Of a DNA stretch of 64,000 nucleotides, positions 2,405 through 12,308 are shown in pieces (position 1 is the first letter of the stretch; each line of letters starts with the position of its first letter). The stretch lies in the IMG/VR virus record IMGVR_UViG_3300031957_002643, positions 62,001 through 126,000 of that record; one strand, written 5' to 3'. The translations under genes were made by a program, and so were the position numbers. Below the pieces are notes generated by a model that did no database searches, was not told the DNA's origin, and was given only the letters and a program-made list of their open reading frames with translations.

Positions 2405-2504
2405 ATTTTATACCATGTAAGATTTAACCCAAGCGCCGATCAATGTCAACAGTGCTACTATCATGGCTGTATAGGAAAGCATTGAAAGTATACTAGGTTT
2501 CTTT

Positions 2505-2612
2505 CTATCCATAATATGTAACGGTTATGGCATGAAGTAACGAAATCAGAGCACCAATGGAGGCAATATAACAAATATAAGCACCGATGCCCGGTCTGTC
2601 GGAATTATTCAT
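2505..2612 (-). CDS. 35-aa membrane peptide
   Basis: MNNSDRPGIGAYICYIASIGALISLL... after a GAGG RBS; the longer ORF overlaps a tRNA. Confidence 0.45.
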   Translation of the reverse strand: MNNSDRPGIGAYICYIASIGALISLLHAITVTYYG

Positions 2613-2630
2613 TATATACCTCAAAAGATT

Positions 2631-2707
2631 TGGCACCCCCAGAAGGATTCGAACCTCCGACACGCAGGGTAGAAACCTGCTGCTCTTCCGGGCTGAGCTA
2701 TGGGGGC
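2631..2707 (-). tRNA. tRNA-Arg (anticodon TCT) with atypical loop
   Basis: GCCCCCA/TGGGGGT acceptor stem, anticodon arm GCAGG-TTTCTAC-CCTGC, GGTTCGAATCC, encoded CCA. Confidence 0.88.
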
Positions 2708-2713
2708 ACACGG

Positions 2714-3010
2714 TTACAATGAGTATTTAGCACTGTGTGCTGTTTCAGTCAAGCTGACAAGAAGAGCCTTCAAATTTGGCGCGATGCCTGCGATCTTATT
2801 AAGCAAGTCTAACTGTGCCGCCTTGATCATGTTCTCAGACAAAATTGATACACTAAGAGTTTCGCCATAACCCGACTGAATAATTTCGTTATAAACTCTT
2901 GTGATGGTTTCTTGACTGATCGCAATCCCCTCATTACTCACATCATATTCAAATTTCAATGTTTGATCATCATCAAACGAGAACTTGCACATGTATGCCG
3001 AAGCAGTCAT
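2714..3010 (-). CDS. hypothetical protein
   Basis: 98-aa ORF with AGGA RBS, in a tightly packed operon. Confidence 0.65.
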   Translation of the reverse strand: MTASAYMCKFSFDDDQTLKFEYDVSNEGIAISQETITRVYNEIIQSGYGETLSVSILSENMIKAAQLDLLNKIAGIAPNLKALLVSLTETAHSAKYSL

Positions 3011-3020
3011 CGGTTAATCC

Positions 3021-3245
3021 TTAAACTGTGAAGGACAAGAGCAGCAATACAGTTGCCCATCCTAATTTGAAGAAGGCATGCATTGTTCTGAATCGGTCAT
3101 AAGACCCACAAACATTTAATGCTTCTCTTTCGCTGCCTGCACGTTTTACGATGTATTTCCATGCAGTCAAATCACTGACCAAAATGTATCTCCAAACAAC
3201 GAAGATACAAATTGCCCAAACCGTGTAGTACCAAAAAGTGCTCAT
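3021..3245 (-). CDS. small membrane protein (two TM segments)
   Basis: Hydrophobic N- and C-terminal stretches. Confidence 0.6.
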   Translation of the reverse strand: MSTFWYYTVWAICIFVVWRYILVSDLTAWKYIVKRAGSEREALNVCGSYDRFRTMHAFFKLGWATVLLLLSFTV

Positions 3246-3308
3246 GCATCTTTGGTATCAGGGGGTTCACCATATTGCAACCCCCTGATACTAAAATCAG
3301 CAGATCGC

Positions 3309-3542
3309 TTAGGCGTAATGCGGAAGCGTATAAACTGCGACAGGATAGCCACGAGTGTTGTTACGAGTCGTATTCGTAACAATGGTGCCATTATTGACCA
3401 TCTCAGAAAGACGGGTGGACACCGTGCCACGGTTCAATTCGTAACGATTTACGATTTCCTGACAGGTGCGGCCACGGCCACGAGCGATGGTGAGTTCAGA
3501 AATGATGCGATCCGCAACAGAGTTGATAGTTGATTTTGCCAT
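3309..3542 (-). CDS. winged helix-turn-helix DNA-binding protein
   Basis: TCQEIVNRYELNRGTVSTRLSEMVNNG followed by a beta-wing; AAGGAG RBS. Confidence 0.75.
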   Translation of the reverse strand: MAKSTINSVADRIISELTIARGRGRTCQEIVNRYELNRGTVSTRLSEMVNNGTIVTNTTRNNTRGYPVAVYTLPHYA

Positions 3543-3577
3543 GATAATCTCCTTTAGACTAAATCAAATGCTTGAGA

Positions 3578-4804
3578 TCACATCATAGTACAATCGTGCG
3601 CGGTTTTCACATCACACGCGCGGTCTCTGATATTTTTTGCAGCATTTAAATCTGCATTTTCAGAATGACCACATGAAACACAGTTGAAACTGGATTGGGA
3701 CTTGCGGTTCTCTTTAGCAATATGGCCACAGGCCGAACACTGTTGAGACGTGAACTTTGCTGATACCTCGATAACAGAGCCACCCATAGGTTCTGTCTTG
3801 TATTTTAGCTGTTGTTTAATCGTGTACAAACCGGGCCGCAAAAGTTCACGGTTCAGTCCAGACTTTGCTTTCACGTTCTTTCCCGGTTCTTCAACGGTGC
3901 CTTTTGCCGATTTGGTCATGTTTTTTAACTTCAAATCTTCTACCGCAAAAGTTTTGTTCTTTTTAACCAGTGCAGCCGTGATCTGATGTCGAGATGCCTG
4001 AGTTGCACGTGTTTTGCGCGAATTCAGCTTTCTCTTTTCTACCAAGACTTTCTTGCGTCTATTAGAACCTTTTTTCGCGCGAGACAGCTTGCGTTGTGAC
4101 TGTTTAATACGGGCGTCGAGAACTTCGTCTTTATGGATTTGGTAAACATCACCATCAGATGTCATGATGGTTTTGTTGATACCCATATCAATTCCAATGA
4201 TCTCTTGTGAATGTGGAATCACTGGTTTTGTGACTGTGATTGTTTCAGTCACCGCCAAATGCCATGTTTCTGCTGCCGGGTCATAAACAATACGAGCATT
4301 CGCACCAAGTGAACCTTTGATTTTGGTCCACTTCTTATATTTCACCCATCCTAATTTTGGAATCTTGATACTGTTTTGTCCGAATCTAACATAAACGGTT
4401 TGGCCGCGCGCCTTGCTCACACCATTAATGCGAATATAAATGCCAAATTTATCAAAATACTCTCGTTTGGTAGGATATTTTGCTTTCAATTTGGGATTGA
4501 AGAAATTAGAACGTGCTTGCTCTAGGTCACTCCATGCAGTAAGAATTGAATCTGACGGGGCTTCACGAAGCCATTCGTTGCCATCTTTCTTCTTATATGC
4601 AGTGATGTCAGAAGATTTTAGCGACAGGTATTTGCCCTTACGTTGATCTTCCGGCAAGGGCAAAATCGTATCACGATAATGTTGGTCGTATACATCTAAG
4701 AAATGATTATAGATGTGGCGACATGCGCCTCTCCATTTGAACAATGTTTTTTCTTGTTCGGGAGATGGATACAATGGGAATTTGATACCACGACTGATTT
4801 GCAT
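3578..4804 (-). CDS. tnpB: CRISPR-associated TnpB/Cas12f-like RNA-guided endonuclease (408 aa)
   Basis: N-terminal HTH (KFPLYPSPEQ...GACRHIYN), RuvC-I IGIDMG, RuvC-II AVEDL, zinc finger CSACG/CVSCG, RuvC-III NADLNAAKNI. Confidence 0.93.
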   Translation of the reverse strand: MQISRGIKFPLYPSPEQEKTLFKWRGACRHIYNHFLDVYDQHYRDTILPLPEDQRKGKYLSLKSSDITAYKKKDGNEWLREAPSDSILTAWSDLEQARSNFFNPKLKAKYPTKREYFDKFGIYIRINGVSKARGQTVYVRFGQNSIKIPKLGWVKYKKWTKIKGSLGANARIVYDPAAETWHLAVTETITVTKPVIPHSQEIIGIDMGINKTIMTSDGDVYQIHKDEVLDARIKQSQRKLSRAKKGSNRRKKVLVEKRKLNSRKTRATQASRHQITAALVKKNKTFAVEDLKLKNMTKSAKGTVEEPGKNVKAKSGLNRELLRPGLYTIKQQLKYKTEPMGGSVIEVSAKFTSQQCSACGHIAKENRKSQSSFNCVSCGHSENADLNAAKNIRDRACDVKTAHDCTMM

Positions 4805-4822
4805 TGTTCTTCTTCCAGATAT

Positions 4823-5252
4823 GTTTCAGTTATCATACAAACCAATAGCTGCCCGATCCTATCACCGAAGACAGACTGCTAGGGCTGTTTCAGTTACCAT
4901 ACAAACCAATGGTTACTCGAACAGAACGTGCTTCGCTTCTCGGTGGAGTACTGTTTCAGTTACCATACAAACCAATGGTTACTCGAACTGCTGGACCGCC
5001 ATACTTCGTTTCGCGCTCGTTTCAGTTACCATACAAACCAATGGTTACTCGAACCAACATCAACCGATCTTCATACTCGAACCAGTTTCAGTTACCATAC
5101 AAACCAATGGTTGCTCGAACTTGTTCAAGAAATTGTGTGACCGGATGTAAGTTCCAGTTACCATACAAACCAATGGTTACTTGAACGGTCCTCGAAGTCG
5201 AACCACGGGGTCACATGTTCCAGTTACCATACAAACCAATGGTTACTTGAAC
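4823..5252 (-). CRISPR. CRISPR array: 7 repeats of 36 nt, 6 spacers (one of 28 nt, five of 30 nt)
   Basis: Plus-strand repeat GTTTCAGTTACCATACAAACCAATGGTTACTCGAAC starts at 4823 (6 mismatches), 4887, 4953, 5019, 5085, 5151 and 5217, with unique spacers. Minus orientation is inferred from the degenerate end repeat, the GAAAC 3' end and the promoter. Confidence 0.97.
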
Positions 5253-5480
5253 TGAAACCATAGCATCTCACTAGAAACATTCACGAAACTAGCTATGTAG
5301 CAACCATTAATATGGTAATCGAGCGGATCACAAGGACCTTCCGTGCTCATTTTAACGCTTCATTTGAAAGGCTTCCACCATCTTGTATCATGTTGCCATA
5401 ACCAATCCGGCTTCCACAAATCATCCACGTCTATGACGATCTGAAACAACCGCCATGTGTTCGTGTTGGTGAACACGAAT
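5253..5480 (-). ncRNA. putative tracrRNA/leader scaffold with anti-repeat
   Basis: Non-coding; 5299-5318 AGCAACCATT-AA-TATGGTAA matches two blocks of the reverse-complement repeat; hairpin TTCGTGTT-GGTG-AACACGAA at about 5460-5479. Confidence 0.55.
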
Positions 5481-5482
5481 GC

Positions 5483-5510
5483 ATAATGGTATATTTTTTT
5501 CATTAGTCAA
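5483..5510 (-). promoter_or_regulatory. putative sigma70 promoter for leader-array-tnpB
   Basis: TTGACT-16nt-CATTAT on the minus strand. Confidence 0.5.
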
Positions 5511-5543
5511 CGAGAAAATGCACAATAAATACCTCTGACGCAT

Positions 5544-6479
5544 ATGGAGCATTTTATGTCAGCTAAGCAGCAAAATCCACTATTGGACGATCTAGACAAT
5601 TTACCTCACATCACAATCACCTTGCCATCAAAGGGATTATTCTATGATGAGGATATGTTTGTAGAAGGAACCGATCCTACTGAATTGGAGGTTCATCCAT
5701 TTACGATGTGGGAAGAGGTTCATCATAGTAATCCGTTTGCCATCATGAGTGGCAAGGCTACTCGCAAAATGGTGAATACCGTTGCACCTGAGATCAAGAA
5801 TCCTGATGGTCTATGTTCTTATGATGTTGATATTCTAATGCTCGCGGGCCGAATGGCTTCTTATGGCGACAAAATGAAAATCACATTGACCTGTGGTAAT
5901 CCCGATCATGTTCGAGAAGTCGAAGAGAATGGTCAAAAGAAAAAGGTCAAATGCGAATCTAAAACGGATATGGATGTCAATATTCGCGAATTGATCAATG
6001 GTTATCCGATGATCGAAAATACGGATGATTGGAATGTGGAATTGCCAAATGGGCAAAAGGTCACGTTCCGACCAACATTGTATAATGATATGTTGAGTGC
6101 AATGAAAATTGGTGTGTCTCAGGAGAAGATCAATCAGATTATCAGAACCATGAAGGATTTGCCTGAAGAAAAGATATTCGAACTATCTGACCAAAGTGTT
6201 GATAACTTGATGAATGTGAAATTGGTCACGACTGTTTCAAGTATTAAATCGGTCATCACATCTGATGGTTCTAAAACGATTAAAGATCGGGACATGATTG
6301 TGCAGTGGTTGAGTCGTCTGAATGCCGATTACATCGATATTATCCAAGACAAGTTGGACGAATTGTCGGCACCATTCGAAAACACTGGTCGCGTTTCATA
6401 TGTGTGCCCTGAATGCGGATACGAAAACAAAGGCATTAATCTGGTTCAGGATCAATCGCGTTTTTTTACTCGCGGCTAA
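5544..6479 (+). CDS. T4 gp26/gp51-like baseplate hub or tail assembly chaperone
   Basis: ITLPSKGLFY, DVDILMLAGRMASYGD, C-terminal CPECG...FF; lies upstream of the tape measure; start probably 5556. Confidence 0.8.
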   Translation: MEHFMSAKQQNPLLDDLDNLPHITITLPSKGLFYDEDMFVEGTDPTELEVHPFTMWEEVHHSNPFAIMSGKATRKMVNTVAPEIKNPDGLCSYDVDILMLAGRMASYGDKMKITLTCGNPDHVREVEENGQKKKVKCESKTDMDVNIRELINGYPMIENTDDWNVELPNGQKVTFRPTLYNDMLSAMKIGVSQEKINQIIRTMKDLPEEKIFELSDQSVDNLMNVKLVTTVSSIKSVITSDGSKTIKDRDMIVQWLSRLNADYIDIIQDKLDELSAPFENTGRVSYVCPECGYENKGINLVQDQSRFFTRG

Positions 6480-11618: not shown

Positions 11619-12308
11619 ATGGCTAGAAAATCTGCATTTAGCGAAAATATTATTCGCACCGCTGAAAAAATGATTCAGCTATCAGAGTCTTCCGACTCTG
11701 CTGTTCGTGATGCCTTGGCAGAAGAAATCGAACAAGAATTTACTCGTGCAACAATCACAATCGCTCGTCAAGTTGCTGAAGAGCTTGGTCTTTATGAGAA
11801 TGAAGGCGTCGAAAGCTATTTGAGTGATGAAGATGACGACTTCGAAGGCGAAAGCGATGATGTCGCAATCGATGACGAAGATGAAGGTGAACTTCTTTTA
11901 GGTGATGACGAGTTTGATGACGAAGGTGATGACTTGGACGATGCCCAAGACGAAATCGACGGTGAACTTCTACAGATGGACGACGATGAAGACGAAGCAC
12001 CATCTGATGAGGGCGACGATGAAGATTTCGGCGCTGATGACGAAGGTGAAGAGTCTGACGAAGGTGACGACGAAGACTTCGACATCGAGCTTCCATCTTT
12101 TGATGATGAAGGTGACGAAGAAGGTGATGACGAATTCGGTGAATTTGATGACGAAGGTGAAGAGTCTGATGACGAAGGTGACGATGAAATCGATGCCGAC
12201 GACGAAGGTTCTGATGCTCTAGACATTGATGGCGTCGATGAAGCTCTATCACAGCTTTCTTCTGATGAAACCATCGAAGAAGACGACTTGGATTTGGATA
12301 ACTTCTAA
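11619..12308 (+). CDS. highly acidic prohead core protein
   Basis: Asp/Glu-rich low-complexity protein between portal and protease; GGAG RBS. Confidence 0.7.
   Translation: MARKSAFSENIIRTAEKMIQLSESSDSAVRDALAEEIEQEFTRATITIARQVAEELGLYENEGVESYLSDEDDDFEGESDDVAIDDEDEGELLLGDDEFDDEGDDLDDAQDEIDGELLQMDDDEDEAPSDEGDDEDFGADDEGEESDEGDDEDFDIELPSFDDEGDEEGDDEFGEFDDEGEESDDEGDDEIDADDEGSDALDIDGVDEALSQLSSDETIEEDDLDLDNF

Follow-up and report, generated by a model that had tools for sequence, protein, structure and literature searches.

The question raised by this locus is whether the stretch preceding a short CRISPR array in a phage genome (5253-5480) encodes a guide-RNA scaffold for the TnpB-sized nuclease whose gene follows the array. 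The window, that is, the whole stretch of DNA analyzed, covers 64,000 nt of a 335-kb marine jumbo phage contig, IMGVR_UViG_3300031957_002643, which comes from seawater runs. An initial annotation, made from the sequence alone, had proposed for this region either a tracrRNA or a relocated omegaRNA-like scaffold that runs in the direction of the array. This reading is supported in silico, because the region is conserved and non-coding, is structured on the minus strand only, pairs with its cognate repeat and is matched by a covariance model in related systems, and because no anti-repeat exists at the canonical site for such an RNA. The leader probably encodes a tracrRNA for the TnpB-sized nuclease, one that base-pairs with the repeats; its transcription and processing and the activity of the complex are inferred. 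Shown in silico are the conservation of the leader, the covariation of its structure, the covariation of anti-repeat with repeat and of a loop with the repeat end, its homology to the tail-encoded RNA of a sister clade, and the intact catalytic triad of the nuclease.

Array, Promoter and Direction of Transcription

The module is flanked by a T4-type baseplate gene on its divergent side (5544-6479, plus strand) and by a run of small minus-strand genes. The array (4823-5252, minus strand) consists of seven repeats of 36 nt (GTTCGAGTAACCATTGGTTTGTATGGTAACTGAAAC) and six spacers of 30 nt. Two repeat variants, G5A and A33G, are found in the two leader-proximal repeats, and the repeat adjoining tnpB (4858-4823) is degenerate, sharing 31 of 38 compared bases (82%) with the reference copy. 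Its repeats are regular, its spacers all different and of one length, and its terminal repeat degenerate, as expected of a CRISPR array. The degenerate repeat adjoins tnpB both in the window and in a relative (L031/L032) whose nuclease, P0002, is 58% identical to the window protein, P0001. On the minus strand, the repeat reads GTT...CTGAAAC. Because of the position of the degenerate repeat, this reading of the repeat and the G-U pairs described below, which fit the minus strand only, the array is considered to be transcribed on the minus strand towards tnpB; the region 5253-5480 is therefore its leader, as the initial annotation had assumed.

A sigma-70-like promoter was predicted by a consensus scan at 5510-5483 on the minus strand (TTGACT at 5510-5505, a 16-nt spacer and CATTAT at 5488-5483), with a predicted transcription start near 5476. 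The sequence TTGACTAAT is kept in the related loci L060, L055 and L061, and TTGACT is kept in L056-59. No terminator was found between the scaffold and the array, and the resulting order of promoter, tracrRNA, array and gene suggests a single transcript. The earlier claim that the leader is co-transcribed upstream of the first repeat rests on this predicted promoter and the lack of a detected terminator, and remains an inference.

The copy of the array in two public seawater runs is identical to that in the window (DNA contigs, which break inside the array). No cas1/cas2 or other adaptation genes were found among the neighbors examined. The repeat pattern had no match in 185,579 species genomes, so that borrowing of a host array is unsupported in that species set, and a search of IMG/VR with the repeat pattern and two leader patterns returned only the window's own contig. 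The spacers gave no credible match in the phage records searched or among the loci collected; by exact 20-mers, four spacers were without a match in IMG/VR and one was without a match in genomes. When the locus DNA was compared with 50,697 phage records, only weak matches to the tnpB coding sequence were obtained. A comparison with omegaRNA models had been suggested at the outset; an Rfam search (E up to 10) over 2500-6000 returned tRNA only, with no omegaRNA or tracrRNA family.

The TnpB-Like Nuclease

The nuclease gene (4804-3578, minus strand) begins 18 nt past the last repeat and encodes a protein of 408 aa. It matches HTH_OrfB_IS605 (PF12323), OrfB_IS605 (PF01385) and Cas12f1-like_TNB (PF07282) in Pfam, all above gathering thresholds, and guided_TnpB (NF040570) in NCBIfam with 228.6 bits against a cut-off of 100. 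The best PADLOC model is Cas12u4, equivalent to Cas12n (E=1.6e-62), Cas12f models also being strong, and generic TnpB models score the protein as well as the Cas12n-type model does. ISDra2 TnpB aligns over the full length (residues 9-397, E=4e-28; 408 aa vs. a 408-410-aa chain in 8H1J/8EXA). The alignment with the Cas12n structure 9J09 (E=4.7e-30) is restricted to residues 227-394, the RuvC half, and similarity to LaTranC (E ~1e-9) is likewise confined to the RuvC part. D206, E289 and D385 align with the motifs GVDVG, TEHLK and DRDENAA of ISDra2 TnpB, in which the catalytic triad (D191/E278/D361) resides. These three residues and the zinc-finger cysteines C356, C359, C375 and C378 are invariant between P0001 and P0002. 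The RuvC D-E-D triad and the CxxC...CxxC zinc finger are thus intact in silico; cleavage activity is inferred.

The protein ends 16 aa beyond its NAAKNI motif and has no long tail, and the next gene follows its stop codon after only 35 nt, too short a gap for a scaffold. Neither within tnpB nor downstream of it was an anti-repeat detected above noise, in the window or in L031, and no scaffold-like element was found in or after the gene. A metagenome scan with a P0001/P0002 profile yielded no close relative of these two proteins. At the window's module, neither tnpA, nor transposon ends, nor any sign of mobility was found, and the window holds no second copy of the module. Its position is fixed: the window and the L031/L060 phage have it at one and the same site, where L034 retains a remnant.

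The Leader Viewed in the Window Alone

Within the window, the case for an anti-repeat is weak. A Smith-Waterman scan for an inverted copy of the repeat gave the leader a score of 23, which was reached by 25 of 1104 equal-sized segments (2.3%) from the rest of the window on both strands, and RNAduplex energies across the window did not single it out. On this evidence, the anti-repeat is only mildly significant and not unique. Folding the isolated leader against shuffled sequences gave no thermodynamic signal (z = 0.0 for the window and +0.6 for L034), and the co-fold of leader and repeat, which had been proposed as a check, reached only z = -1.9 for the leader plus the first repeat. Comparison with related loci changes this picture, because the anti-repeat proves to lie directly 3′ of a conserved stem and to covary with the repeat.

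Relatives of the Leader in Other Phages

In the P0002 phage, the array lies directly upstream of the gene in the same direction. Its contigs break inside the array, and the leader side was recovered through the neighboring baseplate gene: the leader and first repeats of the P0002-type phage were found on L060, L055 and L061, of which L060 shares its run with L031. In L034, the array and ~90% of tnpB have been lost; the leader is kept with 79% identity, and the remnant includes the last ~45 tnpB codons in frame. The stretch 5455-5295 on the minus strand is a conserved non-coding sequence in these three phage lineages. A 47-aa ORF overlaps it (5503-5360, minus strand), and its frame is broken by 1-nt or 2-nt indels in L034 and L060; the DNA blocks on either side of these indels stay conserved, and the identity runs past the ORF stop.

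The loci L056-59 are very close to L060 and lack the whole unit. Their sites still read KNIRARALNV*, the C-terminus of P0002. L056-59 and L035 were once considered as 'empty sites' marking an insertion that ends inside tnpB. This reading was dropped, because 'NIRDR...' is the normal continuation of TnpB in homologues and L056 retains the P0002 C-terminal residues; L056-59 and L035 are now read as derived by deletion. As inferred from sequence, L056-59 are precise deletions between two copies of AAAAATAT and not pristine insertion sites. Because the module has been deleted repeatedly in close relatives (L034 and L056-59), it is dispensable for the phage. A further idea, that the leader is what is left of the 3′ end of another tnpB copy, found no support by blastx.

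Elements of the Proposed Leader RNA

All sequence blocks listed in the initial annotation are present where it had placed them; its assignments held in part. At the predicted 5′ end, an 8-bp hairpin, TTCGTGTT-CACC-AACACGAA, occupies 5479-5460 (minus strand, as are all elements below unless noted); its sequence is specific to the window phage and is kept neither in L060 nor in L034. P1, the equivalent of 'stem 1', follows at 5454-5435, with the stem GGCGGUU/GAUCGUC and an invariant loop. This loop, GUUUCAG (5447-5441), is exactly complementary to CUGAAAC, the invariant 3′ end of the repeat, with which a pseudoknot is proposed. The stem itself covaries (CG/AU/GC and UA/CG).

The P2-P4 domain (5434-5354) comprises a conserved block, AUAGACGUGGAUG, and the P2 helix enclosing the variable P3 and P4. 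P2 is a long-range helix of the RNAalifold consensus, in which GACGU (5431-5427) pairs with GCGUU (5358-5354). P3 contains the GGAAGCC duplication; the duplicated GGCTTCCAC noted earlier at 5370 and 5409 is present and specific to this phage. P4 (5402-5387) is a hairpin with a conserved CAAC-containing loop, and it includes what had been read as a partial repeat copy, GTTGCCATAACCAAT on the plus strand at 5392-5406; that reading failed, the block being an internal hairpin. The spacing from P1 to the next block is 82-85 nt in the three phage lineages, and the domain is much shorter in the more distant relatives L052 and L067. P5 (5357-5321) is the most conserved block, CGUUAAAAUGAGCACGGAAGGUCCUUGUGAUCCGCUC, formed by GAGC...GCUC and an inner 3-bp stem, with covariation in the inner stem (GU/UA/CG) and at the closing pair (CG/AU/UA). 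Across the three lineages, two blocks are near-invariant, GUUUCAG.UC.UC.AUAGACG.GGAUG and CGUUAAAAUGAGCACG...CGCUC.

The anti-repeat lies 3′ of P5 in two parts. AR-1 (5318-5310), UUACCAUA(U), pairs with repeat nt 21/22-29, and AR-2 (5308-5299), AAUGGUUGCU, pairs with repeat nt 6-15. The two blocks first described as complementary to the repeat, TTACCATA at 5318-5311 and AATGGTTGCT at 5308-5299, correspond to the AR-1 region and to AR-2, respectively. From the anti-repeat to the first repeat runs a non-conserved linker (5298-5253) with a hairpin CAUAGC...GCUAUG at ~5297-5259; the hairpin at this site in L060 is another one. The linker also holds a second GUUUCAG (5258-5252), found in the window only and not in the relatives. 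The claim that GTTTCAGTT at this junction (5258-5250) is the complement of the repeat 3′ end failed in so far as the block, although present, is missing from the sister lineage L060; the complement that is conserved is the other GTTTCAG, that of the P1 loop.

Consensus Structure and Pairing with the Repeat

RNAalifold, applied to the minus strand of the three leader lineages, gave P1-P5 followed by a free 3′ end, the anti-repeat. This consensus has an energy of -21.2 kcal/mol and 35 pairs, with 93% of cells paired. Double changes occur at 12 of the 35 pairs; none of 500 shuffles was as good, and in slid controls 36-52% of cells were paired. The plus-strand consensus is far weaker (-8.9 kcal/mol, 17 pairs). 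When five lineages were aligned by fitting them to the covariance model described below (alignment A11), 91.6% of cells were paired, against 37-51% in slid controls, and 17 pairs showed double changes. The sequences used to test the consensus structure are those from which it was derived, and they comprise three phage lineages and two distant relatives only.

The repeats of the window and L060 differ at 13-15 of 36 positions, and the anti-repeats follow them. Pairing between repeat and anti-repeat is kept in 33 of 34 cells for the two systems, compared with 26-44% in slid controls, with two double changes and three wobble-preserving changes. Opposite AR-1, between the window and L060, repeat position 28 switches from A (facing U) to U (facing A), position 22 from U (facing A) to A (facing U), and position 23 from A to G, with U facing it in both. 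Opposite AR-2, position 9 switches from A (facing U) to U (facing A). The anti-repeat pairs perfectly with the repeat 3′ arm where the repeat's own hairpin is mismatched (A·A or U·U), and the G-U pairs of the duplex fit minus-strand RNA only. For both the window and L060, the lowest-energy structure predicted has the anti-repeat paired in cis with repeat 1 as a hairpin.

The loop of P1 changes together with the repeat end in a similar manner. The loop and repeat end are GUUUCAG:CUGAAAC in the window and L060, and GCUUCAG:CUGAAGC in L067, the third such pair being CGCUUCAAGU:AUUUGGAGUG; in L052, the loop GCUUCAA faces the repeat end UUGGAGU(G). In L052 and L067, loop and repeat end have changed together. 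The A33G variant of the two leader-proximal repeats keeps the loop pairing as G-U. Cognate pairs of loop or anti-repeat with repeat beat non-cognate ones in four systems. The CUGAAAC end (-7 to -1) directly adjoins the footprint of AR-1 (-16 to -8), and a co-fold of the L060 leader and repeat predicts a composite helix of P1 loop and AR-1. AR-1 ends at -8 in both phages (9 bp in the window and 11 bp in L060). In L067, the run found by script ends at -10, and two more tracrRNA bases added by eye bring it to -8; the bases directly after P5 (UCAGACUGCAA) pair there with the stretch preceding the repeat end, partly by direct reading. A pseudoknot from the stem 1 region to the guide-adjacent repeat bases is stated as pairing potential and not as a solved structure. 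A 7-bp pairing to a hairpin loop of 6-8 nt competes sterically with P1 itself.

Covariance Model and the Canonical Sister Clade

The covariance model suggested by the initial annotation was built from the three leaders (R1) and run over ~396 kb of collected loci. Beyond the leaders, it matched L052/L053 only (24.8 bits, E ~1e-5 to 2e-4), and no further match had an E value under 0.8; L067, which was added later, gave 24.2 bits. The matches in these two canonical relatives (24-25 bits, E 1e-6 to 2e-4) are found on the expected strand and at the expected place only. P0006 and P0009, the proteins encoded by L052/L053 and L067, rank among the nearest relatives of the window protein. In both of these systems, the match lies on the strand of the gene, just after the RuvC-III codons, inside a long C-terminal tail, and is followed by an array with repeats of 29 nt in L052 and 36 nt in L067. 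A tracrRNA overlapping a long C-terminal tail, with the array downstream, is the hallmark of Cas12n, and P0006 and P0009 share it.

In a tree of 41 rows with tails trimmed and a midpoint root only, P0001 and P0002 are sister to the P0006/P0009 clade (support 98/97). The R1 matches lie in the two nearest array-bearing relatives, in which loops and anti-repeats fit their own, different repeats. In silico, the leader RNA is homologous to the tail-encoded tracrRNA of this Cas12n-like sister clade.

Proposed Mechanism

In the mechanism proposed here, the minus-strand stretch 5510-3578 would be a compact module of promoter, scaffold (~5476-5299), linker, seven-repeat array and gene for a 408-aa TnpB-type protein. 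The scaffold would consist of P1, the enclosed and variable P2-P4, the conserved P5 and the 3′ anti-repeat. Three contacts would hold the guide complex together: the last seven, spacer-adjacent repeat nucleotides CUGAAAC with the P1 loop GUUUCAG as a pseudoknot, repeat nt 21/22-29 with AR-1, and repeat nt 6-15 with AR-2. The scaffold RNA is inferred to start from the predicted promoter and to be co-transcribed with the array and tnpB, and RNase III or the nuclease itself may then cut the transcript into tracrRNA:crRNA pairs. The complex would cleave DNA matching the 30-nt spacers beside a PAM/TAM that has not been identified. Its targets would probably be competing phages or other mobile elements, although no protospacers were found in the searches made. 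The upstream position of the RNA would be explained most simply as a derived rearrangement of the Cas12n-like layout of gene, tracrRNA and array.

A bolder reading goes further. The locus might be a permuted, self-contained type V cassette of 1.9 kb, in which tracrRNA, array and the tail-less nuclease would all be expressed from one promoter on a single transcript. The tracrRNA might be joined in cis to repeat 1 by the hairpin linker, so that the first spacer would be carried by a natural single guide, and later spacers would be served by the tracrRNA in trans. Such a single guide, which the initial annotation had also envisaged, is topologically possible and is predicted by folding, but it has not been shown. 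The layout might have arisen from a Cas12n-like unit through tandem duplication and loss, with the copies of AAAAATAT (a K-N-I codon stretch) at the unit ends as the scar and also as the substrate of the deletions in sister phages. Taken as a whole, with cassette, cis single guide and origin by duplication and loss combined, this reading is less likely than not.

Alternative Explanations

The most serious alternative to a working tracrRNA is that the scaffold is real by descent and the system is a decaying or idle remnant that no longer supports interference. In favor of this, the module has been lost repeatedly, by a partial deletion in L034 and precise deletion in L056-59; the array is identical in two samples; and neither adaptation genes nearby nor protospacers were found in the searches made. 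However, tnpB remains an intact ORF, its triad and zinc-finger cysteines kept, in two lineages that share only 58% identity, and the anti-repeat has tracked the divergence of the repeat since these lineages split. Such tracking requires selection on the pairing, and a remnant is considered unlikely. It is still less plausible that the complementary blocks are debris of a decayed or inverted repeat without RNA function, an alternative that the initial annotation itself had raised. The repeat is a quasi-palindromic hairpin, of which an inverted copy resembles a direct one, the match within the window alone has p ~0.02, and the junction GTTTCAG (5258-5252) is not conserved. Against this, every system has its anti-repeat immediately 3′ of P5, even L067, in which the anti-repeat sequence is unrelated, and the anti-repeat complements the repeat 3′ arm better than the repeat's own 5′ arm does: positions 9 and 28 of the repeat oppose each other as A·A or U·U internally and form A-U pairs with the anti-repeat. 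The G-U pairs, moreover, make the pairing strand-specific. The conserved position of the anti-repeat and its tracking of the repeat thus disfavor debris strongly.

A cis-regulatory 5′ leader that controls transcription, processing or translation of the array-tnpB transcript, through base-pairing between anti-repeat and repeat 1 and between P1 loop and repeat ends, without any role in a guide complex, is also very improbable. Scaffold and array would form the 5′ UTR of tnpB, because the gene starts 18 nt past the last repeat, and the cis hairpin with repeat 1 is the predicted minimum-energy fold. However, the homologous RNA in L052 and L067 lies 3′ of the coding core and not in a 5′ UTR, and the geometry fits a solved guide-RNA scaffold (PMC12216341). 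The remaining possibility, that the region encodes the 47-aa protein (5503..5360, minus strand) together with promoters of the divergent genes, is practically ruled out. The ORF does begin with ATG, and its core, WRLFQIVIDVD.LW, aligns with a 65-aa ORF in L034. However, the frame-breaking indels of L034 fall between conserved blocks, L060 has a 2-nt deletion inside the 'core', and 21 identical bases continue beyond the stop codon; among 1.84 billion representatives, the protein has no family, its sole homologue being L034's own ORF.

Comparison with Known Systems

The preferred reading, a tracrRNA encoded in the leader, fits a type V tracrRNA in silico on three counts: an anti-repeat beside the array and effector, a multi-stem scaffold 5′ of the anti-repeat, and the potential for a pseudoknot. 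Published guide RNAs of Cas12n and Cas12f have 3-4 stem loops and a final anti-repeat stem, and TnpB, Cas12n and Cas12f share an L-shaped core of stems 1-2 and a pseudoknot (PMC12216341). A close comparison is with Cas12n (type V-N, formerly V-U4; 9J09), which the window resembles in guide geometry, in the best PADLOC model and in the RuvC half of the protein. The tracrRNA of Cas12n is ~170 nt long and overlaps a disordered C-terminal tail; in the RdCas12n guide, nt -4 to -2 pair with -168 to -170 to extend stem 1 as a pseudoknot, the repeat:anti-repeat duplex makes up stem 5, the last stem, and stem 2 varies and tolerates truncation (PMC12216341). Unlike Cas12n, the window protein has 408 aa and no tail, and over its N-terminal half there is no alignment with 9J09; tracrRNA and array precede the gene, and the carrier is a marine jumbo phage. 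The Cas12n criterion of a tail-encoded tracrRNA and a downstream array is met in L052 and L067 but not in the window.

With IS200/IS605 TnpB and its omegaRNA (ISDra2), the window protein shares full-length homology, near-identical size and the catalytic motifs, and the proposed scaffold shares a guide-adjacent pseudoknot, but the window lacks a single RNA of scaffold and guide at the 3′ end of the gene, and its guides come from an array. The criteria for an omegaRNA, namely a right-end RNA overlapping the tnpB 3′ end and a mobile IS200/IS605 or IS607 element, are not met. Cas12f (type V-F) is similar as a miniature effector with a multi-stem-loop tracrRNA of 100-200 nt and a terminal anti-repeat. 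Its tracrRNA, however, lies between the effector gene and the downstream array, and the protein has REC/WED expansions and works as a dimer; the window protein is closer to TnpB than to Cas12f. Among TranC nucleases, CauTranC9 (phage-borne clade 9, ~414 aa) is likewise TnpB-sized without enlarged REC/WED or CTD (bioRxiv 10.64898/2026.03.27.714800). It shares with the window a short array of 5-7 repeats of 36-38 nt, the lack of cas1/cas2 and a Caudoviricetes genome, and TranC guides are split into tracrRNA and crRNA, as in the window, where this is known in silico only. The differences are that no consistent tracrRNA structure has been reported for clade 9, whereas one is defined for the window, and that the use of a right-end RNA is impossible in the window, because it has no right end.

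TnpB-sized nucleases that are associated with arrays and use split guides are thus already known from Cas12n, TranC clades and many V-U groups. About 50 independent transitions from TnpB to Cas12 have been inferred (PMC12669027), and splitting of the guide RNA has been named the key step (bioRxiv 10.64898/2026.03.27.714800). In a large survey, conserved associations of Cas12 with arrays were almost always downstream of the gene (PMC10691335). A recent large screen sought the tracrRNAs of Cas12f and TranC between effector gene and array, and found a consistent structure in two TranC clades only; a tracrRNA placed as in the window would escape searches limited to this gap. As a very small cassette with a defined candidate tracrRNA, the module can be tested as a compact editor and as a phage weapon against competitors. 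What is distinctive here is the upstream array with its leader-embedded tracrRNA, the loss of the tail and the jumbo-phage setting, and the locus adds a case in which a TnpB-sized nuclease would have kept a Cas12n-type split guide, its RNA module having moved in front of the gene.

Boundaries of the tracr-array-tnpB unit

Direct copies of AAAAATA(T) flank the unit composed of the tracrRNA-like leader, the CRISPR array and tnpB; they lie at 5483-5500 and 3612-3625 in the window and are also present in L060 and L031, two phage loci with a related unit, and in L056. The right-hand copies are the K-N-I codons of tnpB. In L056-59, close relatives of L060 from which the whole unit is deleted, the missing DNA is exactly the stretch between both copies.

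The 3′-end of tnpB carries, on the minus strand, a G+C-rich hairpin (GCGCG...CGCGC) followed by a TATGAT-like hexamer (3585-3625), also found in L034, L035 and L056. The hairpin shows compensatory changes from phage to phage, and the element, which overlaps the final tnpB codons, is retained also in phages that lost tnpB. It is probably a promoter or regulatory element for the next gene, which encodes a 77-aa HTH-like protein (3542-3309). The gap from the baseplate gene to this 77-aa gene varies across the phage group (L062:1900-4000 versus L064/L066), and in L062 holds several additional small genes, one of which encodes an HTH_3 protein.

Other genes of the window include two minus-strand tRNA-Arg(TCT) genes (2328-2404 and 2631-2707), 300 nt apart and downstream of the tnpB block. 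Also on the minus strand are a GNAT acetyltransferase ORF (1442-1903) and a 234-aa ORF (732-1436) whose product has the core domain of class II aminoacyl-tRNA synthetases; L034 carries this synthetase-like gene as well. On the plus strand, a structural-module gene contains a long Asp/Glu-rich coding stretch of imperfect repeats (11858-12238), with units of the GATGACGAAGGTGA type.

Repeat-like pieces within spacers

Several spacers of the window (5055-5084, 5121-5216) hold stretches similar to the repeat ends. One spacer, at 5084-5055, begins with TGGTTCGAGTA, versus GTTCGAGTAA at the repeat start; that at 5216-5187 contains GGTTCGAC and TTCGAGG; and that at 5150-5121 ends in CTTGAACAA, the complement of GTTCAAG. 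These pieces may have arisen by chance, or could be a relic of array growth without Cas1-Cas2.

Repeats and arrays near other relatives of the nuclease

Directly 3′ of the stop codon of P0008 (412 aa), a 21-nt hairpin unit, GTTTATCGTGATGGGTAAAC, occurs in three copies (L054:4239-4395), spaced by 50 and about 75 nt and reaching the contig end. These units, which gave no match to R1, the covariance model built from three phage leaders, might represent a mini-array or omegaRNA-array. Among distant viral relatives of the nuclease (IMG/VR loci L009-L030), which share 30-40% identity in the RuvC half, many are followed, about 350-500 nt beyond the gene, by CRISPR arrays; such array-bearing loci are presumably further phage-borne type V systems.

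At L052:1523-1930 and L067:1357-1703, two metagenomic TnpB-like genes, P0006 (486 aa) and P0009 (449 aa), respectively, end in long C-terminal “tails”, which are the translated tracrRNA plus the first repeats of the downstream CRISPR array. The array has about five 29-nt repeats in L052 and at least four 36-nt repeats in L067. From sequence alone, both loci appear to be Cas12n-like systems that have so far been left unannotated.
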